A stretch of 64,000 nucleotides of DNA from Auanema rhodensis (GCA_964057225.1 OZ059894.1:15748001-15812000); one strand, 5' to 3'; positions 1-30,045 are shown, counted from the first letter of the stretch. Numbers and translations: made by a program. Notes: a model not told the origin generated them from the sequence alone.

Positions 1-70
1 AGGAATACTATTCGCGTCATGGTATAAACTACAATGGTTTATATTATCGACGCAGGAGCATAACGGAACG
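1..70 (+). mobile_element. 3' terminus of a structured repeat/mobile-element module, truncated by the window start and joined to the tRNA-array spacer
   Basis: The reverse complement (CGTTCCGTTATGCTCCTGCGTCGAT...TAGTATTCC) aligns colinearly with 9347-9442 and 10484-10581. It ends in the same AGCATAACGGAACG and abuts spacer sequence CCAGAAATCT at 71. Confidence 0.7.
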
Positions 71-3000
71 CCAGAAATCTAATTTATCTATTTTTTTATT
101 TTTTGGTACTACCGATTTAGAATTCATCATACACCTCGGTGTATGCCACATTCGAAGCAGCGTGGCGCAGTGGAAGCGTGCTGGGCCCATAACCCAGAGG
201 TCGGTGGATCGAAACCACTCGCTGCTAGTGTTTTACCGATTCCAGAAATCTAATTTATCTATTTTTTTATTTTTTGGTACTACCGATTTAGAATTCATCA
301 TACACCTCGGTGTATGCCACATTCGAAGCAGCGTGACGCAGTGGAAGCGTGCTGGGCCCATAACCCAGAGGTCGGTGGATCGAAACCACTCGCTGCTAGT
401 GTTTTACCGATTCCAGAAATCTAATTTATCTATTTTTTTATTTTTTGGTACTACCGATTTAGAATTCATCATACACCTCGGTGTATGCCACATTCGAAGC
501 AGCGTGGCGCAGTGGAAGCGTGCTGGGCCCATAACCCAGAGGTCGGTGGATCGAAACCACTCGCTGCTAGTGTTTTACCGATTCCAGAAATCTAATTTAT
601 CTATTTTTTTATTTTTTGGTACTACCGATTTAGAATTCATCATACACCTCGGTGTATGCCACATTCGAAGCAGCGTGGCGCAGTGGAAGCGTGCTGGGCC
701 CATAACCCAGAGGTCGGTGGATCGAAACCACTCGCTGCTAGTGTTTTACCGATTCCAGAAATCTAATTTATCTATTTTTTTATTTTTTGGTACTACCGAT
801 TTAGAATTCATCATACACCTCGGTGTATGCCACATTCGAAGCAGCGTGGCGCAGTGGAAGCGTGCTGGGCCCATAACCCAGAGGTCGGTGGATCGAAACC
901 ACTCGCTGCTAGTGTTTTACCGATTCCAGAAATCTAATTTATCTATTTTTTTATTTTTTGGTACTACCGATTTAGAATTCATCATACACCTCGGTGTATG
1001 CCACATTCGAAGCAGCGTGGCGCAGTGGAAGCGTGCTGGGCCCATAACCCAGAGGTCGGTGGATCGAAACCACTCGCTGCTAGTGTTTTACCGATTCCAG
1101 AAATCTAATTTATCTATTTTTTTATTTTTTGGTACTACCGATTTAGAATTCATCATACACCTCGGTGTATGCCACATTCGAAGCAGCGTGGCGCAGTGGA
1201 AGCGTGCTGGGCCCATAACCCAGAGGTCGGTGGATCGAAACCACTCGCTGCTAGTGTTTTACCGATTCCAGAAATCTAATTTATCTATTTTTTTATTTTT
1301 TGGTACTACCGATTTAGAATTCATCATACACCTCGGTGTATGCCACATTCGAAGCAGCGTGGCGCAGTGGAAGCGTGCTGGGCCCATAACCCAGAGGTCG
1401 GTGGATCGAAACCACTCGCTGCTAGTGTTTTACCGATTCCAGAAATCTAATTTATCTATTTTTTTATTTTTTGGTACTACCGATTTAGAATTCATCATAC
1501 ACCTCGGTGTATGCCACATTCGAAGCAGCGTGGCGCAGTGGAAGCGTGCTGGGCCCATAACCCAGAGGTCGGTGGATCGAAACCACTCGCTGCTAGTGTT
1601 TTACCGATTCCAGAAATCTAATTTATCTATTTTTTTATTTTTTGGTACTACCGATTTAGAATTCATCATACACCTCGGTGTATGCCACATTCGAAGCAGC
1701 GTGGCGCAGTGGAAGCGTGCTGGGCCCATAACCCAGAGGTCGGTGGATCGAAACCACTCGCTGCTAGTGTTTTACCGATTCCAGAAATCTAATTTATCTA
1801 TTTTTTTATTTTTTGGTACTACCGATTTAGAATTCATCATACACCTCGGTGTATGCCACATTCGAAGCAGCGTGGCGCAGTGGAAGCGTGCTGGGCCCAT
1901 AACCCAGAGGTCGGTGGATCGAAACCACTCGCTGCTAGTGTTTTACCGATTCCAGAAATCTAATTTATCTATTTTTTTATTTTTTGGTACTACCGATTTA
2001 GAATTCATCATACACCTCGGTGTATGCCACATTCGAAGCAGCGTGGCGCAGTGGAAGCGTGCTGGGCCCATAACCCAGAGGTCGGTGGATCGAAACCACT
2101 CGCTGCTAGTGTTTTACCGATTCCAGAAATCTAATTTATCTATTTTTTTATTTTTTGGTACTACCGATTTAGAATTCATCATACACCTCGGTGTATGCCA
2201 CATTCGAAGCAGCGTGGCGCAGTGGAAGCGTGCTGGGCCCATAACCCAGAGGTCGGTGGATCGAAACCACTCGCTGCTAGTGTTTTACCGATTCCAGAAA
2301 TCTAATTTATCTATTTTTTTATTTTTTGGTACTACCGATTTAGAATTCATCATACACCTCGGTGTATGCCACATTCGAAGCAGCGTGGCGCAGTGGAAGC
2401 GTGCTGGGCCCATAACCCAGAGGTCGGTGGATCGAAACCACTCGCTGCTAGTGTTTTACCGATTCCAGAAATCTAATTTATCTATTTTTTTATTTTTTGG
2501 TACTACCGATTTAGAATTCATCATACACCTCGGTGTATGCCACATTCGAAGCAGCGTGGCGCAGTGGAAGCGTGCTGGGCCCATAACCCAGAGGTCGGTG
2601 GATCGAAACCACTCGCTGCTAGTGTTTTACCGATTCCAGAAATCTAATTTATCTATTTTTTTATTTTTTGGTACTACCGATTTAGAATTCATCATACACC
2701 TCGGTGTATGCCACATTCGAAGCAGCGTGGCGCAGTGGAAGCGTGCTGGGCCCATAACCCAGAGGTCGGTGGATCGAAACCACTCGCTGCTAGTGTTTTA
2801 CCGATTCCAGAAATCTAATTTATCTATTTTTTTATTTTTTGGTACTACCGATTTAGAATTCATCATACACCTCGGTGTATGCCACATTCGAAGCAGCGTG
2901 GCGCAGTGGAAGCGTGCTGGGCCCATAACCCAGAGGTCGGTGGATCGAAACCACTCGCTGCTAGTGTTTTACCGATTCCAGAAATCTAATTTATCTATTT

Positions 3001-6000
3001 TTTTATTTTTTGGTACTACCGATTTAGAATTCATCATACACCTCGGTGTATGCCACATTCGAAGCAGCGTGGCGCAGTGGAAGCGTGCTGGGCCCATAAC
3101 CCAGAGGTCGGTGGATCGAAACCACTCGCTGCTAGTGTTTTACCGATTCCAGAAATCTAATTTATCTATTTTTTTATTTTTTGGTACTACCGATTTAGAA
3201 TTCATCATACACCTCGGTGTATGCCACATTCGAAGCAGCGTGGCGCAGTGGAAGCGTGCTGGGCCCATAACCCAGAGGTCGGTGGATCGAAACCACTCGC
3301 TGCTAGTGTTTTACCGATTCCAGAAATCTAATTTATCTATTTTTTTATTTTTTGGTACTACCGATTTAGAATTCATCATACACCTCGGTGTATGCCACAT
3401 TCGAAGCAGCGTGGCGCAGTGGAAGCGTGCTGGGCCCATAACCCAGAGGTCGGTGGATCGAAACCACTCGCTGCTAGTGTTTTACCGATTCCAGAAATCT
3501 AATTTATCTATTTTTTTATTTTTTGGTACTACCGATTTAGAATTCATCATACACCTCGGTGTATGCCACATTCGAAGCAGCGTGGCGCAGTGGAAGCGTG
3601 CTGGGCCCATAACCCAGAGGTCGGTGGATCGAAACCACTCGCTGCTAGTGTTTTACCGATTCCAGAAATCTAATTTATCTATTTTTTTATTTTTTGGTAC
3701 TACCGATTTAGAATTCATCATACACCTCGGTGTATGCCACATTCGAAGCAGCGTGGCGCAGTGGAAGCGTGCTGGGCCCATAACCCAGAGGTCGGTGGAT
3801 CGAAACCACTCGCTGCTAGTGTTTTACCGATTCCAGAAATCTAATTTATCTATTTTTTTATTTTTTGGTACTACCGATTTAGAATTCATCATACACCTCG
3901 GTGTATGCCACATTCGAAGCAGCGTGGCGCAGTGGAAGCGTGCTGGGCCCATAACCCAGAGGTCGGTGGATCGAAACCACTCGCTGCTAGTGTTTTACCG
4001 ATTCCAGAAATCTAATTTATCTATTTTTTTATTTTTTGGTACTACCGATTTAGAATTCATCATACACCTCGGTGTATGCCACATTCGAAGCAGCGTGGCG
4101 CAGTGGAAGCGTGCTGGGCCCATAACCCAGAGGTCGGTGGATCGAAACCACTCGCTGCTAGTGTTTTACCGATTCCAGAAATCTAATTTATCTATTTTTT
4201 TATTTTTTGGTACTACCGATTTAGAATTCATCATACACCTCGGTGTATGCCACATTCGAAGCAGCGTGGCGCAGTGGAAGCGTGCTGGGCCCATAACCCA
4301 GAGGTCGGTGGATCGAAACCACTCGCTGCTAGAGTTTTACCGATTCCAGAAATCTAATTTATCTATTTTTTTATTTTTTGGTACTACCGATTTAGAGTTC
4401 ATCATACACCTCGGTGTATGCCACATTCGAAGCAGCGTGGCGCAGTGGAAGCGTGCTGGGCCCATAACCCAGAGGTCGGTGGATCGAAACCACTCGCTGC
4501 TAGTGTTTTACCGATTCCAGAAATCTAATTTATCTATTTTTTTATTTTTTGGTACTACCGATTTAGAATTCATCATACACCTCGGTGTATGCCACATTCG
4601 AAGCAGCGTGGCGCAGTGGAAGCGTGCTGGGCCCATAACCCAGAGGTCGGTGGATCGAAACCACTCGCTGCTAGTGTTTTACCGATTCCAGAAATCTAAT
4701 TTATCTGTTTTTTTATTTTTTGGTACTACCGATTTAGAATTCATCATACACCTCGGTGTATGCCACATTTGAAGCAGCGTGGCGCAGTGGAAGCGTGCTG
4801 GGCCCATAACCCAGAGGTCGGTGGATCGAAACCACTCGCTGCTAGTGTTTTACCGATTCCAGAAATCTAATTTATCTATTTTTTTATTTTTTGGTACTAC
4901 CGATTTAGAATTCATCATACACCTCGGTGTATGCCACATTCGAAGCAGCGTGGCGCAGTGGAAGCGTGCTGGGCCCATAACCCAGAGGTCGGTGGATCGA
5001 AACCACTCGCTGCTAGTGTTTTACCGATTCCAGAAATCTAATTTATCTATTTTTTTATTTTTTGGTACTACCGATTTAGAATTCATCATACACCTCGGTG
5101 TATGCCACATTCGAAGCAGCGTGGCGCAGTGGAAGCGTGCTGGGCCCATAACCCAGAGGTCGGTGGATCGAAACCACTCGCTGCTAGTGTTTTACCGATT
5201 CCAGAAATCTAATTTATCTATTTTTTTATTTTTTGGTACTACCGATTTAGAATTCATCATACACCTCGGTGTATGCCACATTCGAAGCAGCGTGGCGCAG
5301 TGGAAGCGTGCTGGGCCCATAACCCAGAGGTCGGTGGATCGAAACCACTCGCTGCTAGTGTTTTACCGATTCCAGAAATCTGATTTATCTATTTTTTTAT
5401 TTTTTGGTACTACCGATTTAGAATTCATCATACACCTCGGTGTATGCCACATTCGAAGCAGCGTGGCGCAGTGGAAGCGTGCTGGGCCCATAACCCAGAG
5501 GTCGGTGGATCGAAACCACTCGCTGCTAGAGTTTTACCGATTCCAGAAATCTAATTTATCTATTTTTTTATTTTTTGGTACTACCGATTTAGAGTTCATC
5601 ATACACCTCGGTGTATGCCACATTCGAAGCAGCGTGGCGCAGTGGAAGCGTGCTGGGCCCATAACCCAGAGGTCGGTGGATCGAAACCACTCGCTGCTAG
5701 TGTTTTACCGATTCCAGAAATCTAATTTATCTATTTTTTTATTTTTTGGTACTACCGATTTAGAATTCATCATACACCTCGGTGTATGCCACATTCGAAG
5801 CAGCGTGGCGCAGTGGAAGCGTGCTGGGCCCATAACCCAGAGGTCGGTGGATCGAAACCACTCGCTGCTAGTGTTTTACCGATTCCAGAAATCTAATTTA
5901 TCTGTTTTTTTATTTTTTGGTACTACCGATTTAGAATTCATCATACACCTCGGTGTATGCCACATTTGAAGCAGCGTGGCGCAGTGGAAGCGTGCTGGGC

Positions 6001-8363
6001 CCATAACCCAGAGGTCGGTGGATCGAAACCACTCGCTGCTAGTGTTTTACCGATTCCAGAAATCTAATTTATCTATTTTTTTATTTTTTGGTACTACCGA
6101 TTTAGAATTCATCATACACCTCGGTGTATGCCACATTCGAAGCAGCGTGGCGCAGTGGAAGCGTGCTGGGCCCATAACCCAGAGGTCGGTGGATCGAAAC
6201 CACTCGCTGCTAGTGTTTTACCGATTCCAGAAATCTAATTTATCTATTTTTTTATTTTTTGGTACTACCGATTTAGAATTCATCATACACCTCGGTGTAT
6301 GCCACATTCGAAGCAGCGTGGCGCAGTGGAAGCGTGCTGGGCCCATAACCCAGAGGTCGGTGGATCGAAACCACTCGCTGCTAGTGTTTTACCGATTCCA
6401 GAAATCTAATTTATCTATTTTTTTATTTTTTGGTACTACCGATTTAGAATTCATCATACACCTCGGTGTATGCCACATTCGAAGCAGCGTGGCGCAGTGG
6501 AAGCGTGCTGGGCCCATAACCCAGAGGTCGGTGGATCGAAACCACTCGCTGCTAGTGTTTTACCGATTCCAGAAATCTAATTTATCTATTTTTTTATTTT
6601 TTGGTACTACCGATTTAGAATTCATCATACACCTCGGTGTATGCCACATTCGAAGCAGCGTGGCGCAGTGGAAGCGTGCTGGGCCCATAACCCAGAGGTC
6701 GGTGGATCGAAACCACTCGCTGCTAGTGTTTTACCGATTCCAGAAATCTAATTTATCTATTTTTTTATTTTTTGGTACTACCGATTTAGAATTCATCATA
6801 CACCTCGGTGTATGCCACATTCGAAGCAGCGTGGCGCAGTGGAAGCGTGCTGGGCCCATAACCCAGAGGTCGGTGGATCGAAACCACTCGCTGCTAGAGT
6901 TTTACCGATTCCAGAAATCTAATTTATCTATTTTTTTATTTTTTGGTACTACCGATTTAGAGTTCATCATACACCTCGGTGTATGCCACATTCGAAGCAG
7001 CGTGGCGCAGTGGAAGCGTGCTGGGCCCATAACCCAGAGGTCGGTGGATCGAAACCACTCGCTGCTAGTGTTTTACCGATTCCAGAAATCTAATTTATCT
7101 GTTTTTTTATTTTTTGGTACTACCGATTTAGAATTCATCATACACCTCGGTGTATGCCACATTTGAAGCAGCGTGGCGCAGTGGAAGCGTGCTGGGCCCA
7201 TAACCCAGAGGTCGGTGGATCGAAACCACTCGCTGCTAGTGTTTTACCGATTCCAGAAATCTAATTTATCTATTTTTTTATTTTTTGGTACTACCGATTT
7301 AGAATTCATCATACACCTCGGTGTATGCCACATTCGAAGCAGCGTGGCGCAGTGGAAGCGTGCTGGGCCCATAACCCAGAGGTCGGTGGATCGAAACCAC
7401 TCGCTGCTAGTGTTTTACCGATTCCAGAAATCTAATTTATCTATTTTTTTATTTTTTGGTACTACCGATTTAGAATTCATCATACACCTCGGTGTATGCC
7501 ACATTCGAAGCAGCGTGGCGCAGTGGAAGCGTGCTGGGCCCATAACCCAGAGGTCGGTGGATCGAAACCACTCGCTGCTAGTGTTTTACCGATTCCAGAA
7601 ATCTAATTTATCTATTTTTTTATTTTTTGGTACTACCGATTTAGAATTCATCATACACCTCGGTGTATGCCACATTCGAAGCAGCGTGGCGCAGTGGAAG
7701 CGTGCTGGGCCCATAACCCAGAGGTCGGTGGATCGAAACCACTCGCTGCTAGTGTTTTACCGATTCCAGAAATCTAATTTATCTATTTTTTTATTTTTTG
7801 GTACTACCGATTTAGAATTCATCATACACCTCGGTGTATGCCACATTCGAAGCAGCGTGGCGCAGTGGAAGCGTGCTGGGCCCATAACCCAGAGGTCGGT
7901 GGATCGAAACCACTCGCTGCTAGTGTTTTACCGATTCCAGAAATCTAATTTATCTATTTTTTTATTTTTTGGTACTACCGATTTAGAATTCATCATACAC
8001 CTCGGTGTATGCCACATTCGAAGCAGCGTGGCGCAGTGGAAGCGTGCTGGGCCCATAACCCAGAGGTCGGTGGATCGAAACCACTCGCTGCTAGTGTTTT
8101 ACCGATTCCAGAAATCTAATTTATCTATTTTTTTATTTTTTGGTACTACCGATTTAGAATTCATCATACACCTCGGTGTATGCCACATTCGAAGCAGCGT
8201 GGCGCAGTGGAAGCGTGCTGGGCCCATAACCCAGAGGTCGGTGGATCGAAACCACTCGCTGCTAGTGTTTTACCGATTCCAGAAATCTAATTTATCTATT
8301 TTTTGATTTTTTGGTTCTACCGATTTAGAATTCATCATACACCTCGGTGTATGCCACATTCGA
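71..8363 (+). tRNA. Homogeneous tandem array of 48 tRNA-iMet genes, 171-bp unit (72-bp gene + 99-bp spacer)
   Basis: Gene starts fall at 156+171k for k=0..47 (checked at 4773, 5970, 7167, 8193). Only a handful of single-base variants are present. Confidence 0.97.
156..227 (+). tRNA. tRNA-iMet(CAT), first copy of the array
   Basis: AGCAGCGTGGCGCAGTGGAAGCGTGCTGGGCCCATAACCCAGAGGTCGGTGGATCGAAACCACTCGCTGCTA. It has A1-T72, three G-C pairs at the anticodon-stem base, a CAT anticodon and a GATCGAAA T-loop (A54/A60), all eukaryotic initiator hallmarks. T4 and T7 Pol III terminators follow. Confidence 0.97.
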
Positions 8364-9346
8364 AGCAGCGTGGCGCAGTGGAAGCGTGCTGGACCCATAA
8401 CAAAGAGGTCGGTGGATAGTGTTTTATCGATTAAAGAAAACTATTTAAATCAATTTTTTTTGATTTTTTGGTTCTACTGGATCAGAATTTATCATACACC
8501 TCGTAGTAGACCACATTCGAAGCAGCGTGGCGCAGTGGAAGCGTGCTGGGCCCATAACCCAGAGGTCGGTGGATCGAAACCACTCGCTGCTAGTGTTTTA
8601 CCGATTCCAGAAATCTAATTTATCTATTTTTTTATTTTTTGGTACTACCGATTTAGAATTCATCATACACCTCGGTGTATGCCACATTCGAAGCAGCGTG
8701 GCGCAGTGGAAGCGTGCTGGGCCCATAACCCAGAGGTCGGTGGATCGAAACCACTCGCTGCTAGTGTTTTACCGATTCCAGAAATCTAATTTATCTATTT
8801 TTTTATTTTTTGGTACTACCGATTTAGAATTCATCATACACCTCGGTGTATACCACATTCAAAGCAGCGTGGCGCAGTGGAAGCGTGCTGGGCCCATAAC
8901 CCAAAGGTCGGTGGAGGTAGGGCTCTTTTTCCATATCTATACCCCCCAATTTTAGCCCCGCCCCTTTTGCCGTCGAGCGCATACTTTTACTACCAGCTTA
9001 CTTCCCTTCCTAAAACGGGGGGTTTGGAGGGGTGCTGGGCCCATAACAAAGAGGTCGGTGGATAGTGTTTTATCGATTAAAGAAAACTATTTAAATCAAT
9101 TTTTTTTGATTTTTTGGTTCTACTGGATCAGAATTTATCATACACCTCGTAGTAGACCACATTCGAAGCAGCGTGGCGCAGTGGAAGCGTGCTGGGCCCA
9201 TAACCCAGAGGTCGGTGGATCGAAACCACTCGCTGCTATTTTTTTACCAATTCCAGAAATCTAATTTATCAATTTTTTGATTTTTGGGTTCTACCGATTT
9301 AGAATTCATCATACACCTCGGTGTATGCCACATTCGAAGCAGCGTG
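8364..9346 (+). tRNA. Mixed tRNA-iMet units: intact copies at 8521, 8692 and 9167; T-arm-deleted pseudogene at 8364; interrupted copies at 8863 and 9338
   Basis: Direct comparison with the consensus unit. Deleted units read GGTGGAT^AGTG, a 17-nt loss of CGAAACCACTCGCTGCT. Confidence 0.9.
8916..9031. other. 116-bp foreign GC-rich insertion inside a tRNA unit
   Basis: The tRNA stops after GGTCGGTGGA (8915) and array sequence resumes at GTGCTGGGCCC (9032). The insert has no similarity to the array and contains a GC box and an inverted repeat. Confidence 0.8.
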
Positions 9347-9442
9347 CGTTCCGTTATGCTACCGCGTCGATCTTACAGACCAATGGAGTCCAAGATGAGC
9401 GTGGTAGTATTCCAGATGTAGCGGTTAAACATGGAGCATAAG
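9347..9442 (-). repeat. Structured ~96-nt module, copy A
   Basis: Direct repeat of 10484-10581, differing by 3 substitutions and one 2-bp indel. Confidence 0.93.
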
Positions 9443-10483
9443 TCGCGTCCGCAATACAAGGTTCGTTAATCAATGCACATCTTGAATGCATAAGATCTTG
9501 AAATTCAAAACTTGAATTCCCGGTGAAAGTTTGACAGTTGGAATAGAATACACAGGATTCAGCAATAGACTTGAGAAGAAGAGTTTTTCCGGAATGCGGT
9601 TGGCGTATAATGAAAAGAGCGTTGACTTTAGGATTTTGCTTGTCTATTATATTATAGACATTATTAACAAAAATTGAAATATCAATATTATTGTGATCCA
9701 TCATACGTTCGAATCATTTCAAGAACTCGTTCACAGATAAAACTGGTGCAGATTCGTAGTAGTCTGAAGGCACAGTTTCTAGCAATGTCATTCAATCTTT
9801 TTTGATCATAGTCGACTTGAACAGTTCTAATAGTTTGTCGGATAATATTGCAAAGTCCTTGTGCACCACCATCTTCCAACCATCTTCTCGTCCGGCCAAT
9901 ATAGATTGCAAGTCGGTTAGTGTTTTGGGCCAGTGCGATGAAAGTGCGAACTGAATCTCTTCCGCGATTCGGCTCTTTCCAGAAATGGCTGTATTCCCCC
10001 AGTCTTTCTTTCTTCGCTTGGATGGGATTTCATCAGCTCTAAATTCGCTCTCTCCATCAGAAGTTGCAATATCGGATCCTCCATCGTCAAGTACAGTCTC
10101 ATTCCTATTTTCTTCTCCTTGCTCATCGGATCCCACATTTGAATTGTTATATTTGTCACATCGGGGGGGGGGGGGGGGGAGTCGTCTTCCAATTGCAAGA
10201 CCTCCACGTGTCTTTCCCCCTTATGTAGATACTCGACGTGGCACTGAAAGCACCGAAGCTTTTTTGTACTGGTTCTTGCTGAATACTAATGTTCTCCAGC
10301 CAATATGCACATAAACTAAAATATTTATTTAAAAAATAACTACACATTTATCAAACAAGAAACATAAGATATCTTCGAATAATTCAAAGTTAAAACGAAA
10401 AATTTCAAAATTGTGTTCCACATTTGGAGGATGAAGAATGAGAAGGAAAACAAATTTGTGATAAGTTCGAGGTGGAACCTCCA
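9443..10483 (-). pseudogene. Endogenous parvovirus/densovirus-like NS1 (Rep, SF3 helicase) fragment
   Basis: One reading frame with stops at 10329-31, 10221-23, 9792-94 and 9714-16 joins NILVYVHIGWR (possible nickase Tyr motif), an acidic/basic linker, KVNALFIIRQPHSGKT (Walker A, GxxxxGKT with G>R) and FEFQDLMHSRCALINEP (Walker B, densovirus-type NEP). The frame is cut off just after Walker B. Confidence 0.85.
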
Positions 10484-10581
10484 CGTTCCGTTATGCTCCC
10501 TCGTCGATCTTACAGACCAATGGAGTCTACAAGATGACCGTGGTAGTATTCCAGATGTAGCGGTTAAACATGGAGCATAAG
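10484..10581 (-). repeat. Structured ~98-nt module, copy B
   Basis: Outer stem TTATGCTCC/GGAGCATAA. Inner hairpin on the minus strand is GTCATCTTGTAGAC-TCCATTG-GTCTGTAAGATCGAC. Confidence 0.93.
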
Positions 10582-10841
10582 GATAAACATAAGACTCGAG
10601 AAAGATTGGTTCATTATATCTACGTGATTACAATAAGATACATATAACTAAGTAAAGGTTAAACTAATAGAGAACAGAGAGAGAACGACCAACCATCCAT
10701 GATCGTCCCTGAGGCAGAGCTGAAGTGTTGTAATATGGAAAAGGGCGGGTCGTCTTCTCTCAGTCTCGCATTCTCTGACTCTAACCTGCCTGCTACAGCT
10801 TCGTCATATGAATGTAATGCATTGATCATCCGAATGGAACT

Positions 10842-10908
10842 CGTGGCGCAGTGGAAGCGTGCTGGGCCCATAACCCAGAGGTCGGTGGATCGAAACCACT
10901 CGCTGCTA
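10842..10908 (+). pseudogene. 3' part (nt 6-72) of the tRNA-iMet gene split by the insertion
   Basis: Matches the consensus from nt 6. A and B boxes are retained, but the 5' acceptor strand is replaced by insert sequence. Confidence 0.9.
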
Positions 10909-10935
10909 GTGTTTTACCGATTCTTTTGTTTGTGA

Positions 10936-13900
10936 TCTACAACGAGGTGTATGATGAATTCTGAATCGGTAGAACCAAAAAATCAAAAAATTGATAAATT
11001 AGATTTCTGGAATCAGTAAAACACTAGCAGCGAGTGGTTTCGATCCACCGACCTCTGGGTTATGGGCCCAGCACGCTTCCACTGCGCCACGCTGCTTCGA
11101 ATGTGGATTACTACGAGGTGTATGATAAATTCTGATTCAGTAGAACCAAAAAATCAAAGAAAATTGATTCAAATACTTTTCTTTAATCGATGAAACACTA
11201 TCCACCGACCTCTTTGTTATGGGCCCAGCACACTTCCACTGCGTCACCCTGCTTCGAATGTGGTCTACTACGAGGTGTATGAAAAATTCTGATTCAGTAG
11301 AACCAAAAAATCAAAAAATTGATGAATTAGATTTCTGGAATCGGTGAAACACTAGCAGCGAGTGGTTTCGATCCACCGACCTCTGGGTTATGGGCTCAGC
11401 ACACTTCCACTGCGTCACCCTGCTTCAAATGTGGTCTACAACGAGGTGTATGATGAATTCTGAATCGGTACAACCAAAAAATCAAAAAATTGATAAATTA
11501 GATTTCTGGAATCGGTAAAACACTAGCAGCGAGTGGTTTCGATCCACCGACCTCTGGGTTATGGGCCCAGCACGCTTCCACTGCGCCACGCTGCTTCGAA
11601 TATGGTCTACAACGAGGTGTATAATAAATTCTGATTCAGTAGAACCAAAAAATCAAAGAAAATTGATTCAAATAGTTTTCTTTAATCGATGAAACACTAT
11701 CCACCGACCTCTTTGTTATGGGCCCAGCACACTTCCACTGCGTCACCCTGCTTCGAATGTGGTCTACTACGAGGTGTATGAAAAATTCTGATTCAGTAGA
11801 ACCAAAAAATCAAAAAATTAATAAATTAGATTTCTGGAATCGGTAAAACACTAGCAGCGAGTGGTTTCGATCCACCGATCTCTGGGTTATGGGCTCAGCA
11901 CACTTCCACTGCGTCACCCTGCTTCGAATGTGGTCTACTACGAGGTGTATGAAAAATTCTGATTCAGTAGAACCAAAAAATCAAAAAATTGATAAATTAG
12001 ATTTCTGGAATCGGTAAAACACTAGCAGCGAGTGGTTTCGATCCACCGACCTCTGGGTTATGGGCTCAGCACACTTCCACTGCGTCACCCTGCTTCGAAT
12101 GTGGTCTACAACGAGGTGTATGATGAATTCTGAATCGGTAGAACCAAAAAATCAACAAATTGATTAATTAGATTTCTGGAATCGGTAAAACACTAGCAGC
12201 GAGTGGTTTCGATCCACCGACCTCTGGGTTATGGGCTCAGCACACTTACACTGCGTCACCCTGCTTCGAATGTGGTCTACAACGAGGTGTATGATGAATT
12301 CTGAATCGGTAGAACCAAAAAATCAAAAAATTGATAAATTAGATTTCTGGAATCGGTAAAACACTAGCAGCGAGTGGTTTCGATCCACCGACCTCTGGGT
12401 TATGGGCCCAGCACGCTTCCACTGCGCCACGCTGCTTCGAATATGGTCTACAACGAGGTGTATAATAAATTCTGATTCAGTAGAACCAAAAAATCAAAGA
12501 AAATTGATTCAAATAGTTTTCTTTAATCGATGAAACACTATCCACCGACCTCTTTGTTATGGGCCCAGCACACTTCCACTGCGTCACCCTGCTTCGAATG
12601 TGGTCTACTACGAGGTGTATGAAAAATTCTGATTCAGTAGAACCAAAAAATCAAAAAATTGATAAATTAGATTTCTGGAATCGGTAAAACAATAGAAGCG
12701 AGTGGTTTCGATCCACCGACCTCTGGGTTATGGGCTCAGCACACTTCCACTGCGTCACCCTGCTTCGAATGTGGTCTACAACGAGGTGTATGATGAATTC
12801 TGAATCGGTAGAACCAAAAAATCAAAAAATTGATAAATTAGATTTCTGGAATCGGTAAAACACTAGCAGCGAGTGGTTTCGATCCACCGACCTCTTTGTT
12901 ATGGGCCCAGCACACTTCCACTGCGTCACCTGCTTCGAATGTGGTCTACTACGAGGTGTATGAAAAATTCTGATTCAGTAGAACCAAAAAATCAAAAAAT
13001 TGATAAATTAGATTTCTGGAATCGGTAAAACAATAGAAGCGAGTGGTTTCGATCCACCGACCTCTGGGTTATGGGCTCAGCACACTTCCACTGCGTCACC
13101 CTGCTTCGAATGTGGTCTACAACGAGGTGTATGATGAATTCTGAATCGGTAGAACCAAAAAATCAAAAAATTGATAAATTAGATTTCTGGAATCGGTAAA
13201 ACACTAGCAGCGAGTGGTTTCGATCCACCGACCTCTGGGTTATGGGCCCAGCACGCTTCCACTGCGCCACGCTGCTTCGAATGTGGTCTACAACGAGGTG
13301 TATGATGAATTCTGAATCGGTAGAACCAAAAAATCAAAAAATTGATAAATTAGATTTCTGGAATCGGTAAAACACTAGCAGCGAGTGGTTTCGATCCACC
13401 GACCTCTGGGTTATGGGCCCAGCACGCTTCCACTGCGCCACGCTGCTTCGAATGTGGCCTACAACGAGGTGTATGATGAATTCTGAATCGGTAGAACCAA
13501 AAAATCAACAAATTGATTAATTAGATTTCTGGAATCGGTAAAACACTAGCAGCGAGTGGTTTCGATCCACCGATCTCTGGGTTATGGGCCCAGCACGCTT
13601 CCACTGCGCCACGCTGCTTCGAATGTGGTCTACTACGAGGTGTATGAAAAATTCTGATTCAGTAGAACCAAAAAATCAAAAAATTGATAAATTAGATTTC
13701 TGGAATCGGTAAAACACTAGCAGCGAGTGGTTTCGATCCACCGATCTCTGGGTTATGGGCTCAGCACACTTCCACTGCGTCACCCTGCTTCGAATGTGGT
13801 CTACAACGAGGTGTATGATGAATTCTGAATCGGTAGAACCAAAAAATCAAAAAATTGATAAATTAGATTTCTGGAATCGGTAAAACACTAGCAGCGAGTG

Positions 13901-16727
13901 GTTTCGATCCACCGACCTCTGGGTTATGGGCCCAGCACGCTTCCACTGCGCCACGCTGCTTCGAATGTGGTCTACAACGAGGTGTATGATGAATTCTGAA
14001 TCGGTAGAACCAAAAAATCAAAAAATTGATAAATTAGATTTCTGGAATCGGTAAAACACTAGCAGCGAGTGGTTTCGATCCACCGACCTCTGGGTTATGG
14101 GCCCAGCACGCTTCCACTGCGCCACGCTGCTTCGAATGTGGTCTACAACGAGGTGTATGATGAATTCTGAATCGGTAGAACCAAAAAATCAACAAATTGA
14201 TTAATTAGATTTCTGGAATCGGTAAAACACTAGCAGCGAGTGGTTTCGATCCACCGATCTCTGGGTTATGGGCCCAGCACGCTTCCACTGCGCCACGCTG
14301 CTTCGAATGTGGTCTACTACGAGGTGTATGAAAAATTCTGATTCAGTAGAACCAAAAAATCAAAAAATTGATAAATTAGATTTCTGGAATCGGTAAAACA
14401 CTAGCAGCGAGTGGTTTCGATCCACCGACCTCTGGGTTATGGGCCCAGCACGCTTCCACTGCGCCACGCTGCTTCGAATGTGGTCTACAACGAGGTGTAT
14501 GATGAATTCTAAATCGGTAGAACCAAAAAATTAAAAAATTGATAAATTAGATTTCAGGAATCGGTAAAACACTAGCAGCGAGTGGTTTCGATCCACCGAC
14601 CTCTGGGTTATGGGCCCAGCACGCTTCCACTGCGCCACGCTGCTTCGAATGTGGTCTACTACGAGGTGTATGATAAATTCTGATCCAGTAGAACCAAAAA
14701 ATCAAAAAAAATTGATTTAAATAGTTTTCTTTAATCGATAAAACACTATCCACCGACCTCTTTGTTATGGGCCCAGCACGCTTCCACTGCGCCACGCTGC
14801 TTCGAATGTGGTCTACAACGAGGTGTATGATGAATTCTGAATCGGTAGAACCAAAAAATCAAAAAATTGATAAATTAGATTTCTGGAATCGGTAAAACAC
14901 TAGCAGCGAGTGGTTTCGATCCACCGACCTCTGGGTTATGGGCCCAGCACGCTTCCACTGCGCCACGCTGCTTCGAATGTGGTCTACTACGAGGTGTATG
15001 AAAAATTCTGATTCAGTAGAACCAAAAAATCAAAAAAAATTGATTTAAATAGTTTTCTTTAATCGATAAAACACTATCCACCGACCTCTTTGTTATGGGC
15101 CCAGCACGCTTCCACTGCGCCACGCTGCTTCGAATGTGGTCTACTACGAGGTGTATGATAAATTCTGATCCAGTAGAACCAAAAAATCAAAAAATTGATT
15201 TAAATAGTTTTCTTTAATCGATAAAACACTATCCACCAATATCTTTGTTATGGGCCCAGCACACTTCCACTGCGTCACCCTGCTTCGAATGTGGTCTACA
15301 ACAAGGTATATGATGAATTCTGAATCGGTAGAACCAAAAAATCAAAAAATTGATAAATTAGATTTCTGGAATCGGTAAAACACTAGCAGCGAGTGGTTTC
15401 GATCCACCGACCTCTGGGTTATGGGCCCAGCACGCTTCCACTGCGCCACGCTGCTTCGAATGTGGTCTACTACGAGGTGTATGATAAATTCTGATCCAGT
15501 AGAACCAAAAAATCAAAAAAAATTGATTTAAATAGTTTTCTTTAATCGATAAAACACTATCCACCGACCTCTTTGTTATGGGCCCAGCACGCTTCCACTG
15601 CGCCACGCTGCTTCGAATGTGGTCTACAACGAGGTGTATGATGAATTCTGAATCGGTAGAACCAAAAAATCAAAAAATTGATAAATTAGATTTCTGGAAT
15701 CGGTAAAACACTAGCAGCGAGTGGTTTCGATCCACCGACCTCTGGGTTATGGGCCCAGCACGCTTCCACTGCGCCACGCTGCTTCGAATGTGGTCTACTA
15801 CGAGGTGTATGAAAAATTCTGATTCAGTAGAACCAAAAAATCAAAAAAAATTGATTTAAATAGTTTTCTTTAATCGATAAAACACTATCCACCGACCTCT
15901 TTGTTATGGGCCCAGCACGCTTCCACTGCGCCACGCTGCTTCGAATGTGGTCTACTACGAGGTGTATGATAAATTCTGATCTAGTAGAACCAAAAAATCA
16001 AAAAATTGATTTAAATAGTTTTCTTTAATCGATAAAACACTATCCACCAATATCTTTGTTATGGGCCCAGCACACTTCCACTGCGTCACCCTGCTTCGAA
16101 TGTGGTCTACAACAAGGTATATGATGAATTCTGAATCGGTAGAACCAAAAAATCAAAAAATTGATAAATTAGATTTCTGGAATCGGTAAAACACTAGCAG
16201 CGAGTGGTTTCGATCCACCGACCTCTGGGTTATGGGCCCAGCACGCTTCCACTGCGCCACGCTGCTTCGAATGTGGTCTACTACGAGGTGTATGATAAAT
16301 TCTGATCCAGTAGAACCAAAAAATCAAAAAATTGATTTAAATAGTTTTCTTTAATCGATAAAACACTATCCACCAATATCTTTGTTATGGGCCCAGCACA
16401 CTTCCACTGCGTCACCCTGCTTCGAATGTGGTCTACAACGAGGTGTATGATGAATTCTGAATCGGTAGAACCAAAAGTAAAAAATTGATAAATTAGATTT
16501 CAGGAATCGGTAAAACAATAGCAGCGAGTTGTTTCGATCCACCGACCTCTGGGTTATGGGCCCAGCACGCTTCCACTGCGCCACGCTGCTTCGAATGTGG
16601 TCTACTACGAGGTGTATGAAAAATTCTGATTCAGTAGAACCAAAAAATCAAAAAAAATTGATTTAAATAGTTTTCTTTAATCGATAAAACAGATTAAAAC
16701 ACTATCCACCGACATCTGGGTTGTGGG
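10936..16727 (-). tRNA. Inverted, heterogeneous tRNA-iMet array of ~34 units (about 16 near-intact, 8 multiply mutated, 10 T-arm-deleted) plus a terminal fragment
   Basis: Reverse-complement tRNA copies, the first at 11025-11096. Variants include AGCAGGGTGACGCAGTGGAAGTGTGCTGAG and CATAACAAAGAGGTCGGTGGATAGTG. Counts were made by eye. Confidence 0.93.
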
Positions 16728-16778: not shown

Positions 16779-17989
16779 TCAACAAACATTAGATGTATAA
16801 GTTATTGTCTGAATTTCATTTGTTAATGACGTTTTTGCTAATATACTCAGTATACATTGTTTATATTCTTGAACTACGGACATTGTTAAAATAGCGTTGG
16901 TGATGGGGAGAATTCCAAGTGTTATTGTCATATATATTTGTATGAATCGAGGCAGCGACACTCTTAGAACCAAAATAAAGATTTGGAAAGAAATAATTGG
17001 TGTTAGGTATAAAATAGATGGAATAGTGCTCTGAAAATGAAAACAATTAGACTTAATGCATTTGCTTTTCATGATACTTGAATGATGAGTAGTTTAAATA
17101 TATGAGTTTGATATTTTCTCATCGAACTGCTAATTTGAGCATTTCCTTTTAATTTTTTCAAAGTTAGAATTGAGCAACTAATAATTGTTGTAATAGTTCC
17201 GGCACAAATGAAGCAAATACATAGAAGCATAGGCAATCGTCTTCGTTCGGAATTCATCACCTGAAAATATTGCATTGGTTTCGATACTTCTGTCTAATTG
17301 GAGTTTTGTTAATATAGTGTAATCACTTACATCTGCTGATATCCCAATGTAGTAATGATATCGAATATCTACACCAGTATGTTCAACTGTGTAGGTTGCT
17401 ATTCCTTTTTCGTATAGTTCATGTGGACCTGCTCCCAACTGAAGAGCTGATCCCCATAGAAACAAAATAAAGAGATCGACTAAGATGATTTTCACGAAAA
17501 ATGTTTTTTTTGGAGATATTTCAGTATCAAATGACCTGAATGTTTTATGAATTCCTAAACATTGTCTAAATTATCACCTATTTATTACGTAGGAGCGATA
17601 GACAAAACAGTTGCTCAATATGATCATCATAGCAACGATGGACATATTTTCATTATAAGAGATAATGGTGCCAATAGTATAATTAACATATCTAGTTATT
17701 CCAATACCAATAATTATGAAAAAACTATTATCTGATAGAAAAACCTATAAATGTAAATTAAAATACAGAAAATAAAAACAAAAAGAAGTCTAATAATAAA
17801 TAATCTCACTGGTGTTGATATGGCGAAAAAAAAACTATGATGTATATCAATCATAGCATAAGCATATAAAAAGTATTTATATCCACCTAGTTTGCTTGTT
17901 GAACTTTTCTGTATAACATAAATAAAAAAAGAGTTGATCATTATTGATATTGTGCCAGATATGAGGCAATAATAGATAAAAAAGTACAT
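16779..17989 (-). CDS. Serpentine chemoreceptor, Str/Srd-type 7TM GPCR (multi-exon)
   Basis: N-terminal INSFFIYVIQKSSTSKLGGYKYFLYAYAMIDI, C-terminal Q-STIPSILYLTP...LPITNAILTMSVVQEYK, and several hydrophobic helices. Confidence 0.8.
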
Positions 17990-18795
17990 TTCCTTCAAAT
18001 TTGTTGTTAAATCTCCTAAAAGAAGTTTGAAAAGGATTGTATTTATAAAAATGTAAAAAGTGAAAAAAATTATTATTATTTAAAATCAGTCCGCAAATAT
18101 TTGATATTCAAAAGTGTTTTTAAAAGTAAAATAAAGTTAACAAGACATAATAATTAGAAATAATTCTCAAAAGACTATCTATAATATTTTATCATTCAGC
18201 AAGATTCAGATTTAATTAGTTAAAATTGAACAGTATATTTATAAAGCTGCATCAACTATATGTTTTCAAGTCTTCTTATAATAGATGTATATTAGTGCTT
18301 GTGTTATTGATGCTTGTGCTATAAGTATATTACTTCTTCCCACACACGGTTATGGGTATATGAAAATATTTATCAACTTTAAAATATCTCATATTTTCTC
18401 TAATGTATTTTATCACAGAATCGTGAAACAAACGAAAAATACTAATGTTATATCACTTAAACAAATCTTGACATATCTTTGATCTGGAGGCTATGCTTTA
18501 AAAAAATTGTATATATGTCACATAATATATAAAATTTAATTGTATACTATATATCTTATATCTTTCGCGGTTTTTGTAGTTTAGTTATATTGTTTGACCT
18601 TTGACATGATATGTATTCAACGAATGGTGTGATATAAGTTTAGTTATTCATTGGCTTATCTTACGTCCCTCTATCATTCAAGTATATAATTACAATTATT
18701 TTATTTATATTTCTCGTCTTTTTTGATAAATATTTCAATTAATTATGTACGTATTCAATTGTTTTCAATAATAGTTGCTTTGCTTATCAGGTCAA

Positions 18796-27660: not shown

Positions 27661-30045
27661 ATGCGAATATCTGCGGCATTAGTGGGCGTTTGCTCACTTG
27701 CGGCTACCGCAGCAACTGTAGCAAATGCTTTTGTTTTAAATAAGCAGTTTTATCCGGCTATGGTTTACATCACCAAAAGTAATGCTAGTATGGCTGTGAG
27801 TTATTAATTTTTTTTTAATAATTTGTTTTATATATTTAGGTTATCTATCTGCAATCTGTAATTATTGTATATTTATTATTTCAACTATTTAAACGTATTT
27901 TCTTTGGGGATTTGAGAGCAGCAGAAGCTGATGTGAGTCTTAGGATTCTAATCTTCATGTTTTTATTGTCTTCTAGAATTTATCAGAGCGAGCTTGGCAT
28001 GCAGTTATGGAGACATGCCTTGCTTTCACCGTCTTCCGAGACGATTTCTCTCCCTTCTTTGTGATGCAGTTTGGAATTTTACTATTTGTAAAAGTGAGGA
28101 AGATATGTCTTGTTTCTATTACTATTTTTTTTATTAAAGAGTTTCCATTGGCTGGCTGATGACCGGGTGGATTTAATGGAACGGAGTCCTGTAATAACAT
28201 TAAAGTTCCATGCACGTATGCTTGGTGAGAATATTATAATATAAACTTCATTTCAATTATTGTATTTCAGCTATAATTGCTTTCCTGGGTGGAATCGATT
28301 CTTATTTAGTATCTCATGCTTATTTTAGTGTATTGATGAAGGGTGCCAGTTCCCAAATTATTTTTGGCTTTGAGTAATATTAAGTTTAATGCTTTACATG
28401 TTAACTTAAACTTTTAGATATGCAATCCTTATTACATTAGTGGTTCATATATCTATCAAATATATCCTCCACATGCATGATTTACGCACAGCTCAATCAT
28501 GGGAAAATAAGGCGGTTTATTTATTATATTCTGAATTGATAATTAGTAAATATCAACAGTGTTTCCTTATTTTTATTCAATTCATTTAGACTTCTTCCGT
28601 TGTATATTGTACGGATTCTTTGCTGCTATAATGTTACAATTACATACTCTTCCACTATTTTCCACTAGACCTTTCTATATGTCAGTGAGGCAAGTCTTTA
28701 TTTTTTATATTCATTAATCATGTGATTTTGTAGAGCTCTGACTAAAGCCTTCAATGATATCATTCTATCTCGCCGTGCTATTCATGCCATGAACAAGTAA
28801 TGTTATTTTTTTAATACCTGTAAAAAAACATGTATTTCAGCTTGTTCCCTGTTGTAACTGCTGAAGAACTTGCCGCTATGGACTCCACTTGTATAATTTG
28901 CCGTGAAGAAATGACGGCAGATTCCCACCCCAAACGCCTGCCCTGCTCACATGTATTCCATACGCATTGTCTACGTAGCTGGTTCCAAAGACAACAAACT
29001 TGCCCAACTTGTCGTACGGATATATTAGGTACATCCAAATGTTGCTTAAATTTCTGAAATAATGATTTAAGCGGACCGAAATAATATCGGCTTGAACGGG
29101 CAAGCTGTTCCTGCAGTTCCAGCAGCTCCAGCTGCACCTGCCGCACAACAAGCTGCTCCTTTACCTCAAAATTTCATGCCTTTCTTGGCTCATCAATTTG
29201 CCGTAAACGCTCCGCAACCTCCAGCACCGCAACAACAACAACAACAACAACAGCACGGGCAACAACAAAATAATCAGGTTAATATTTGCCAAATAATAAT
29301 TCAAATTATTGAAATACAGCAAGCACAGCCAGGAGCAAATACCAACAATGTACCACCAATTCCCCCGATGGGATTTGGGCCACCACCCCCACCACCTTTC
29401 CCCGCTTTCATGCCTCAATTCGGAATGGTTTGTTTTCATTTGTTTCCATCAAACACAAATATTTTGTTAGCATGGATCAATGTTCCTTCCACCACCACCT
29501 CCACCACCGTTCCCACTCCCTGGTCGACCTTCATATTCTGGCTTCACAGACGAAGAGCTTTTTGCGATGGAAGGTGATGCCAGAGAAGCAATAGAAAGAA
29601 GACTCCATGCATTGAATGATATTTATACTTTGCTGGAAGCTGCAGGCATTCAAATGCAACAGTACATGACTCACATATCTCCATCTCTACCGTAAAAAAA
29701 ATAATTAAGACTAGCCAAACATATTTTTTTCAGAAACTTCCCTAGATCATCTGGTGATTCAAGCTCAGGGGCGACACAAGGCTCAACTACTTCGCAACCA
29801 TCTCGAGTTTCTCCCCAACCACAAGAGAACAATACTACAGAAATGGAAGACAATTCCGAGCCATCAGCCCGTGAAGAGTTATCAGAATTAGAGCCAGAAC
29901 AAGAGGCAGGGCCATCTACTTCAAACAGGTAAAACAATACAAGGAATTATTTCAATTATTAAATATTTCTAGCACCGCTGAACAAGCCGATAATTCAGCT
30001 GATGAATTAAGGCAAAGAAGAATGCTGAGATTCTCTAATTTTTAA
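27661..30045 (+). CDS. sel-11: ERAD E3 ubiquitin ligase HRD1/synoviolin
   Basis: KQFYPAMVYITKSNASMA, FFGDLRAAE, ETCLAFTVFRDDF, RING-H2 CIICREEM...PCSHVFHTHCLRSWFQRQQTCPTCR, Pro-rich tail ending ELRQRRMLRF. Confidence 0.96.

Follow-up and report, generated by a model that had tools for sequence, protein, structure and literature searches.

A covarying hairpin module at the unit ends of a compound insertion with a parvovirus-like NS1 fragment in a tRNA array of the nematode Auanema rhodensis

We analyzed a stretch of 64,000 nucleotides from the genome of the nematode Auanema rhodensis (GCA_964057225.1 OZ059894.1:15748001-15812000; the whole stretch is called the window here). Its left part, amounting to 26% of the window, is a tandem array of initiator-type tRNA-Met genes. 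Within this array an initial annotation, made from the sequence alone, had drawn attention to a structured module of about 96 nucleotides that occurs in three copies with a covarying hairpin and an invariant terminus. Two of these copies were found to belong to a compound insertion that interrupts one tRNA gene and also carries a fragment of a parvovirus-type NS1 gene. We consider it likely that the module is the 3'-terminal cis-element of a small family of non-autonomous, strand-asymmetric mobile elements in this nematode. The features of the locus are as follows:

71-16691: tandem tRNA array, about 95 units of 171 bp, each with one initiator-type tRNA-Met gene
1-70, + strand: module copy C, of which the 3' 70 nucleotides are visible and the rest is cut off by the window edge; diverged subfamily; hairpin at 14-53
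9343-9346, + strand: target duplication CGTG, left copy, tRNA positions 6-9
9347-10841, - strand: compound insertion of 1495 bp that splits one initiator tRNA-Met gene between tRNA positions 9 and 10
9347-10483, - strand: unit 2, 1137 bp, composed of 5' TGGAG-GTTCCACC, about 200 AT-rich nucleotides, the NS1 fragment and module copy A ending in GGAACG
9347-9443, - strand: module copy A, 3' end of unit 2, meeting the tRNA gene at 9346/9347
9441-10285, - strand: dead fragment of an NS1 gene of parvovirus type, covering a linker and, downstream of it, the SF3 helicase as far as Walker B
10474-10478, - strand: GTTCC of unit 2, 5 nucleotides inside its 5' end
10484-10841, - strand: unit 1, 358 bp, composed of 5' A-GTTCCATT, a body of 261 nucleotides (X) and module copy B ending in GGAACG
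10484-10580, - strand: module copy B, complete, 97 nucleotides, structure intact, 3' end of unit 1
10836-10840, - strand: GTTCC of unit 1, 1 nucleotide inside its 5' end
10842-10845, + strand: target duplication CGTG, right copy, where the tRNA starts again at position 6

The 3' motif of the module, AGCATAACGGAACG, occurs exactly three times in the 64 kb, at 57-70 (+), 9347-9360 (-) and 10484-10497 (-). Dinucleotide shuffling gave an expected count of 0.24 and none of 100 shuffles reached three occurrences, so that the proposed set of three copies with a common end was borne out. A covariance model built from the three copies scored B with 119.9 bits, A with 106.8 bits and C with 57.4 bits (E = 1.5e-12). 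Copies A and B are 95% identical over 97-98 nucleotides, and the visible 70 nucleotides of C show about 77% identity to B. One and the same 3' terminus adjoins three unrelated neighbors. Copy C ends with AACGGAACG at position 70, where it abuts the array spacer (..GATT/CCAGAAATC) 14 nucleotides past a tRNA 3' end and in the same orientation as the tRNAs, and copy A is oriented opposite to the tRNA gene that it interrupts. The flanks of A and B differ on both sides, and the flank of C differs on its visible side. The 5' edge of the module is fixed as well, as A and B both start at CTTATGCTCC with unrelated sequences upstream. There is no poly(A) at the 3' end, which carries the near-repeat AACGG-AACG, and all copies share the single-stranded blocks GGAATACTA and GGAGCATAACGGAACG without change. 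Copy A is decaying: its hairpin has lost 2 nucleotides, and one pair is broken in the hairpin and another in the outer stem; such a loss of structure is as expected of a dead copy. The evidence on copies, termini and covariation comes from one locus with two complete copies and one partial copy.

On the strand ending in GGAACG, minimum-energy folding predicted the very hairpins that had been proposed for copies B and C. For copy C the fold has -19.3 kcal/mol (z = -4.9) and none of 200 shuffles was as stable; for copy B the values are -27.2 kcal/mol and z = -2.3. In copy B a hairpin of 14 bp with a bulged C lies at 10503-10538 within a larger closed domain; it ends 19 nucleotides before the module terminus, and the last seven nucleotides, CGGAACG, form a single-stranded tail. 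The stems of B and C differ by eight substitutions but all 14 hairpin pairs are kept: eight pairs are invariant, three have changed on both sides (C-G to G-U, U-A to G-U and G-C to A-U) and two have changed on one side by way of G-U. Conservation of the 7-nucleotide loop and of the bulged C agrees with the initial annotation; the stem base (GTCAT / AT-C-GAC) is conserved too, and the sole unpaired cell in the hairpin alignment belongs to the decayed copy A. When the 3' partner was slid by one to three columns, pairing dropped from 97% to 23-47%. In a simulation that placed eight random substitutions in the stem of B, all 14 pairs survived in 0.016% of the trials (p ~2e-4), the covariation being a single pairwise comparison of B with C. 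The four wobble pairs are all G-U on the strand ending in GGAACG, as had been stated, and would become tandem A-C mismatches on the complement. We conclude that the module is real and under structural selection and that the claim of a strand-specific single-stranded signal at an invariant terminus is supported by motif counts, folds, covariation and simulation. DNA parameters predict the hairpin equally well, and folding therefore cannot separate RNA from single-stranded DNA. It is extremely unlikely that the copies are three leftovers of local duplication without any function, in which the hairpin was kept by chance. The small number of copies (three, with 1.1 kb between two of them) and covariation from one sequence pair would suit this explanation; it is contradicted by the unlike flanks described above, by eight stem substitutions without a broken pair and by a motif count above that of all shuffles.

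The outer stem that was thought to close the domain, UUAUGCUCC/GGAGCAUAA (TTATGCTCC/GGAGCATAA in copy B), is indeed present in A and B together with a small AUGU/ACAU arm. Both are confined to these near-identical copies and consequently have no covariation support, and one pair of the outer stem is broken in A. No further copy was detected in the 64 kb by the three-copy covariance model with filters off, and exact-pattern scans for the module found none in viral, JGI metagenome or prokaryotic genome contigs. Translations running through the module gave no candidates in a collection of 5.8 billion proteins, and a full-text literature search with the terminal 13-mer returned no match; the literature on tRNA arrays, nematodes and endogenous viral elements supplied general background only. 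With Rfam 15, only tRNAs reached the gathering thresholds across the 64 kb. The comparison of the module itself with Rfam, carried to E values of up to 10 (regions 9200-11000, 10470-10600 and 1-90), assigned it to no known family, its sole overlap being a chance match of 10.8 bits to a long non-coding RNA model. The models covered without a match to the module included UnaL2, R2 3' elements, hammerhead, HDV-like and twister ribozymes, sbRNA/Y RNA and tRNA, and no family of self-cleaving ribozymes matched even at E up to 10. ARAGORN called no tRNA on the module. A CRESS-like nonanucleotide was considered at GGAATACTA, which is the reverse complement of TAGTATTCC, and rejected: the small stem around GGAATACTA is lost in copy C and the Rep at this locus is of parvovirus type.

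Mapping of the array units left the region 9347-10841 uncovered. The intact tRNA reads AGCAGCGTGGCGCAG; its left piece stops at ..AGCAGCGTG before the insertion and the right piece restarts with CGTGGCGCAG, positions 6-65 of the tRNA model matching 10842-10902. On the - strand, the insertion is accordingly preceded by ..CACG and followed by CACG... Judged by its sequence, the region consists of two complete units arranged head to tail inside one insertion. Unit 2 starts exactly at the base after the terminus of unit 1 and has no target duplication of its own. This two-unit insertion of 1495 bp with its 4-bp duplication, the GTTCCA starts of the units, the fixed 5' edge of the module and the NS1 fragment go beyond what the initial annotation had noticed. 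The statement that all copies lie in the tRNA array is true. However, A and B belong to one compound insertion, which leaves only two independent insertion sites; the two occupy different places within the 171-bp unit and are oriented oppositely. The link to tRNA genes that had been implied does not hold up, since two sites in an array that covers so large a part of the window are not significant; targeting of tRNA genes is thus not supported. The direct repeats were also considered as ends of a long terminal repeat (LTR) element or a terminal-repeat retrotransposon in miniature, and this was rejected, as TG..CA ends and a polypurine tract are both missing and only TGG follows copy B, with no tRNA-complementary primer site.

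Both units open with GTTCCA, 1-6 nucleotides from their boundary, and GTTCC is the reverse complement of the 3'-terminal GGAAC. In the 1495 nucleotides of the insertion GTTCC is found at positions 2 and 364 only. The chance of both placements is about 2e-5, uncorrected, at the background frequency of the non-array part of the window. The junction between copy B and unit 2 reads GGAAC-GTGGAG-GTTCC, a 5-bp inverted repeat around a 6-nucleotide spacer, with the boundary after the first spacer base; for unit 1 the inverted repeat of 5 bp extends to 7 of 8 positions. Beyond GTTCC(A), the unit starts aligned no better than shuffles with each other or with the reverse-complemented module. Just upstream of copy B there is a partial echo, 13 nucleotides long, of the first 20 nucleotides of the module (CTTATGTTTATCC). 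The body X (10581-10841) has no similarity to the module, the remaining window or the virus contigs described below, and neither X nor the junction of B with unit 2 folds better than shuffles. X also contains an imperfect hairpin of about 100 nucleotides (10670-10768, - strand) with a sub-threshold Rfam match to mir-14 (25.5 bits against a gathering threshold of 53).

The roles that had been suggested for the module, namely an end recognized by reverse transcriptase (RT), a small non-autonomous RNA or a rolling-circle terminus, are all still live. Among the possible mechanisms we tentatively favor, at somewhat below an even chance, movement as single-stranded DNA by an HUH/Rep-type enzyme, either by rolling circle or by peel-and-paste. 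The proposed element has a minimal 5' end (GTTCCA) and an elaborate 3' end, in which the blocks GGAATACTA and GGAGCATAACGGAACG flank a hairpin with conservation limited to pairing, loop size, bulged C and stem base. Under an HUH/Rep mechanism this hairpin would be the recognition structure of the protein on the transferred strand. The strand would be cut directly after ..GGAACG. Where the 3' end meets the 5' end, GGAAC could pair with GTTCC so that the cut site is placed in the loop of a small hairpin (GGAAC-G/NNNNN-GTTCC, with the cut at the slash). The copies, their termini, the covariation, the layout in two units, the 4-bp duplication and the NS1 homology are observed; from them we infer the single-stranded DNA intermediate, the HUH enzyme and the identity of the cut position with a nick site. 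The head-to-tail pair at 9347-10841 might have arisen when a strand was transferred to the cut site of a copy already in place or when this site was read through, and the start of unit 2 right after the terminus of unit 1 is what is expected from Rep strand transfer at a cognate site or from bypass of termination. The NS1 fragment of unit 2 would be captured cargo or the remnant of a Rep gene, and a Rep-type NS1 gene fits the HUH model in either way. Capture of gene fragments and composites with several 3' ends are hallmarks of rolling-circle transposons such as Helitrons. An HUH/Rep mechanism would naturally explain the fixed 3' terminus, the covarying hairpin, the complementary 5' motif and the exact tandem.

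Rather less probable is a function of the module as an RNA 3' end that is recognized by the RT of a "stringent" non-LTR retrotransposon (CR1/L2/RTE/R2-like, without poly(A)), or as a SINE-like RNA of 97 nucleotides (SINE, short interspersed nuclear element). The locus would then be the product of one target-primed event in which the RT, having copied the module RNA of copy A, switched first to a viral NS1 transcript, then to a second module RNA (copy B) at its 3' end and lastly to another RNA (X). The precise 3' end without poly(A), the multi-branched 3' domain, the covarying hairpin with G-U pairs on the sense strand and the 4-bp target duplication all agree with this proposal, and the shared 5' edge of A and B would be that of a discrete RNA which was copied through to the 5' end. 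Upstream of B, the partial echo of the module start resembles RT stuttering, and the terminal AACGG-AACG resembles the short repeats at CR1/L2-type ends. The machinery of long interspersed nuclear elements (LINEs), moreover, is known to bring non-retroviral virus genes into genomes by retroposition. Template jumps could explain the tandem and the Rep gene in addition to the terminus, the hairpin, the module 5' edge and the duplication. They do not explain GTTCCA at both unit starts: a reverse complement of the 3' end is predicted by a nick-site hairpin or by short terminal inverted repeats but not by an RT tail, and it favors a mechanism at the DNA level or with a hairpin across the junction. 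Further, no RT or endonuclease open reading frame (ORF) was found in the 64 kb, the two complete copies show no series of 5' truncations and the module matches none of the LINE 3' elements or ribozymes in Rfam. Finally, the NS1 fragment lacks its 5' coding end and is preceded by about 200 unrelated AT-rich nucleotides, which is not what simple copying of an mRNA through to the 5' end would leave.

Inverted GTTCC/GGAAC at the unit ends, exact head-to-tail units and a 4-bp repeat around the whole insertion could also be produced by site-specific recombination or by an ordinary double-stranded DNA transposon, both of which we regard as unlikely here. For a tyrosine recombinase the core would be GGAAC-(6 nt)-GTTCC with inverted arms and the units would be serial cassettes, following a Crypton-like or integron-attC-like logic, in which the apparent target duplication CACG is a shared crossover core. 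The 6-nucleotide spacers at the junction of B with unit 2 (GTGGAG) and at a notional circle junction with one CACG (GCACGA) would suit such a core, as would a module that forms a sharply delimited block between unrelated "cassettes"; the signature of attC sites is an extrahelical base in an imperfect hairpin whose shape is conserved over its sequence. Although this core covers GTTCCA, the tandem, the module 5' edge and the duplication, its arms are only 5-8 bp long, the two spacers agree at 2 of 6 bases and the prior for such a system in animals is low, integron-like systems being to our knowledge unknown there. A transposon of the DDE type would have very short inverted ends and a 4-bp target duplication and would have moved the two units as a composite. 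It explains GTTCCA and the duplication but neither the covarying hairpin nor the tandem, in which unit 2 is without a target duplication of its own. Inverted repeats of at least 10 bp, a fixed duplication for each element and a transposase, which would define a "cut-and-paste" element, were not found. For both versions it also counts that the 5' regions of the units are alike only in GTTCC(A), also against the reverse-complemented module, that no recombinase or transposase gene was seen in the window and that recognition of double-stranded DNA leaves a covarying G-U hairpin unexplained.

The NS1 fragment lies on the same strand as the structured strand of the module, and its homology ends exactly at the 5' edge of copy A. 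A profile made from the relatives' NS1 proteins matched the insertion over positions 59-335 of 423 with E = 5e-69. The fragment lacks the N-terminal region, which holds the HUH motif in the relative P0002, as well as the C-terminal third of the helicase. Two in-frame TGA codons (9792-9794 and 9714-9716) interrupt it, as does a frameshift at the homopolymer of 17 nucleotides at 10163-10179. This run of 17 G (C on the NS1 sense strand) is the site of the sole NS1 frameshift and may be a slipped genuine run coding for poly-proline or a length error of sequencing or assembly. An ORF of 116 amino acids (9354-9704, - strand) gave weak matches to Pfam Parvo_NS1 (E = 6e-4) and to the papillomavirus E1 helicase, and an exact look-up of this ORF found no match. 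Since homology to the NS1 SF3 helicase, a disrupted frame and host flanks are all present, as in endogenous parvoviral elements, the region 9441-10285 represents a nematode case of an endogenous parvovirus-like element. Earlier reports of parvovirus-related sequences in nematodes concern a single genome (PMC5013282).

A search of 1.84 billion representative proteins gave 207 matches, 40 of them below 1e-10. The best matches are proteins of 400-470 amino acids with a Parvo_NS1 domain (E = 1e-17 to 6e-24), and P0002 and P0003 share 51-53% identity with the fragment over 88-89 amino acids in the region from Walker A to Walker B. The relatives are encoded on contigs of 4.1-4.7 kb and have come to light in sequencing-run and metagenome assemblies only. 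These contigs carry a second gene of capsid size, mostly in ambisense arrangement (same-sense in 2 of 7), and an NS1 of 350-470 amino acids with a very short HUH region. Every relative contig examined has an inverted repeat of 30 nucleotides at its ends; this length equals the assembler's k-1, which implies longer inverted terminal repeats. Motifs conserved at the contig ends, AGACTACA and TTCTTATC, do not occur in the module. Related viruses were found neither in IMG/VR nor in the phage collection, and the relatives (loci L001-L007) apparently form an undescribed virus clade. One relative contig is mis-binned as Trichococcus, and P0041 on a contig of 24 kb, tried as a host-encoded NS1, turned out to be a false positive with bacterial cadherin repeats.

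With a viral gene in unit 2, the module might be the terminal hairpin or origin of the virus that donated NS1 and the locus an integrated defective virus genome. Parvovirus telomeres are branched hairpins of about 100 nucleotides that NS1 cuts at a fixed site, and the module is like them in size, in its branched fold and in its neighborhood to an NS1 gene: A and B both touch the NS1 segment, B in the position of a left end upstream of NS1 and A after the truncated gene. Weak echoes of the virus-end motifs CTTATCA and GTGTAGT are found 19 and 139 nucleotides after B. We nevertheless consider it very improbable that the module is a viral end. A and B are direct repeats, whereas the terminal repeats of the related viruses are inverted, and the unpaired 3' tail of 7 nucleotides could not prime DNA synthesis. 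The covariance model found no match at the ends of the seven related contigs (L001-L007), whose outermost hairpins are not assembled, its best score being 16.6 bits inside a capsid gene. Unit 1 has the module without any viral sequence, and neither X nor the first ~200 nucleotides of unit 2 gave a tblastx, blastn or profile signal of viral origin. Moreover, integration junctions of parvoviruses are normally ragged, while the module ends at one fixed base, and a second subfamily, copy C, is present at another site. The module was thus probably not part of the NS1-donor virus. A bolder and quite improbable extension of single-stranded DNA movement would have the locus represent an undescribed class of animal mobile elements that are cut and joined as single-stranded DNA by a parvovirus-type NS1/Rep, either as a virus-derived HUH transposon or as an integrating satellite of a nematode parvo-like virus. 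The 97-nucleotide fold would then be the origin or terminator and unit 2 a decayed Rep-bearing copy.

Several observations weigh against movement by an HUH/Rep enzyme. The main difficulty is the 4-bp CGTG target duplication around the insertion. Known HUH transposons normally make no target duplication, although Replitron-1 is an HUH element that does so (PMC10288648). The termini are also unlike those of any described HUH element, as there is no TC...CTRR and no A/T or T/T target (insertion point at the slash), and the ends carry neither subterminal repeats of 12-15 bp nor direct terminal repeats. Directly 3' of the proposed cut, the two junctions continue with unlike bases (TGGAG versus A or CACGA), and the GTTCC pattern was noticed post hoc at two junctions. 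No autonomous partner of the element is present in the window. On the side of the NS1 gene, the nearest relatives belong to capsid-encoding viruses of 4.1-4.7 kb with inverted terminal repeats and no module, and no NS1 family of nematode or other host genomes was seen among the 207 matches, those checked being, apart from the false positive P0041, on contigs of at most 5.5 kb. Without the HUH region and the C-terminal third, the fragment resembles captured cargo more than a gene of the element itself.

Of the systems known to us, the locus comes closest in working to the ends of Helitrons and Helentrons and to the tails of stringent LINEs and SINEs, although the defining features of canonical Helitrons and Helentrons are absent. 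With the former it shares asymmetric ends, a short conserved 5' end, a hairpin near a precise 3' end, capture of gene fragments and composite or tandem elements with common 3' ends. In these systems (HINE, DINE-1), non-autonomous copies far outnumber coding ones. The distance of 19 nucleotides from hairpin to terminus resembles that of Helitron/Helentron ends and of the right ends of IS200/IS605. Canonical Helitrons differ by ends of the type 5'-TC ... CTRR-3' in place of (A)GTTCC ... GGAACG, by insertion between A and T, which is not seen here, and by the lack of a target duplication such as the 4-bp one of the present insertion. Their hairpin lies about 10-12 nucleotides from the 3' end; a hairpin is present here too, ending 19 nucleotides from the terminus and within a larger closed domain. 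Helentrons share with the units a short inverted motif near the 5' end, in their case at 2-4 nucleotides from it, and have palindromes 8-35 bp from the 3' end (PMC4067079). Measured against the Helentron/HINE definition in the same work, only the palindrome distance agrees; there is no TT target and there are no T-rich flanks, and the inverted motif, which in Helentrons is 12-15 bp long and lies 38-60 bp from the 3' end, is 5-6 bp long and terminal. The 97-nucleotide, apparently multi-branched 3' domain also sets the module apart from both groups, and no Rep/Pif1-helicase gene was seen. Replitrons have short direct terminal repeats and a CRESS-like Y1 Rep and occur in plants, algae and protists (PMC10288648), in contrast to the inverted ends and the nematode host found here.

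The tails of stringent LINEs and SINEs (eel UnaL2/UnaSINE, CR1/L2, R2 3' untranslated region) likewise have a precise 3' end without poly(A), a stem-loop near the end with fixed shape and loop size but variable stem sequence, a terminal near-repeat, one tail on unrelated upstream sequences and a target duplication. They differ from the present locus in the inverted GTTCCA 5' ends, the common 5' edge of the module and the fact that no partner LINE is visible. Variable 5' truncation was not observed, the homology of A and B starting at the same base in the two copies that could be evaluated, and target-site duplication amounts to one 4-bp CGTG at a single insertion with no empty site. The right ends of IS200/IS605 and the attC sites of integrons are similar in being strand-specific, folded single-stranded DNA with an imperfect palindrome and an extrahelical base, in which shape prevails over sequence, and in fixed-distance cleavage 3' of the hairpin and head-to-tail units. 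However, they are bacterial, their core sequences are unlike those of the module, no Y1 transposase or integrase lies nearby and the duplication is peculiar to the present locus. We know of no animal counterpart of these systems.

The size of the array for a single tRNA is unusual in itself. ARAGORN called 67 and Rfam 75 tRNA genes in it, and the main tRNA sequence of 72 nucleotides is present in 63 identical copies, 50 on the + strand and 13 on the - strand. Array units are oriented + through 10923 and - from 10938, and the inversion junction at 10924-10937 consists of 14 nucleotides of filler between + and - units; only about 80 bp separate this breakpoint from the compound insertion. Degenerate and internally deleted tRNA copies are concentrated at 8270-9170 and across the - oriented half. 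Between 4300 and 7300 four diagnostic variants recur with a period of 1197 bp (7 units), with one step of 1368 bp (8 units) in the same higher-order repeat. This period suggests that blocks of seven units have recently undergone unequal exchange. At 8916-9024, a unique filler of 109 bp, rich in runs of C and G, links two partial tRNA units, the left of which ends in the T-arm while the right resumes at about tRNA position 22. This filler has no second copy within the window and may be a fragment of another element or repair filler. Ordinary host genes lie beside the array. Exons of serpentine chemoreceptors (Srj/Str) are found at 16779-17998 on the - strand, ORFs at 16.8-18.0 kb matching the nematode-specific families Srj, Srd and Str, and the region 28830-29600 (+) contains a RING-H2 exon (HRD1/synoviolin-like, 28.8 kb) followed by a Q/P-rich exon.

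Should Dfam or Repbase already list the family, the finding would be one of routine repeat annotation. If the single-stranded DNA reading is true, A. rhodensis would harbor an animal element of the rolling-circle type whose ends fall outside the Helitron, Helentron and Replitron groups and which is physically linked to a parvovirus-type Rep gene. It would then bear on the exchange of parts between single-stranded DNA viruses and transposons and on the entry of virus genes into animal germlines. If instead the RT reading is true, the locus would be a clear natural case of template jumping that captured the transcript of a DNA virus, and the module would belong to a rare SINE-like element in a rhabditid nematode. 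On either reading, the module is a compact protein-recognition fold made up of conserved single-stranded blocks, a stem kept in shape only and a bulged C, and the locus records a parvovirus-like endogenous element in the nematodes, a phylum with barely any such reports.

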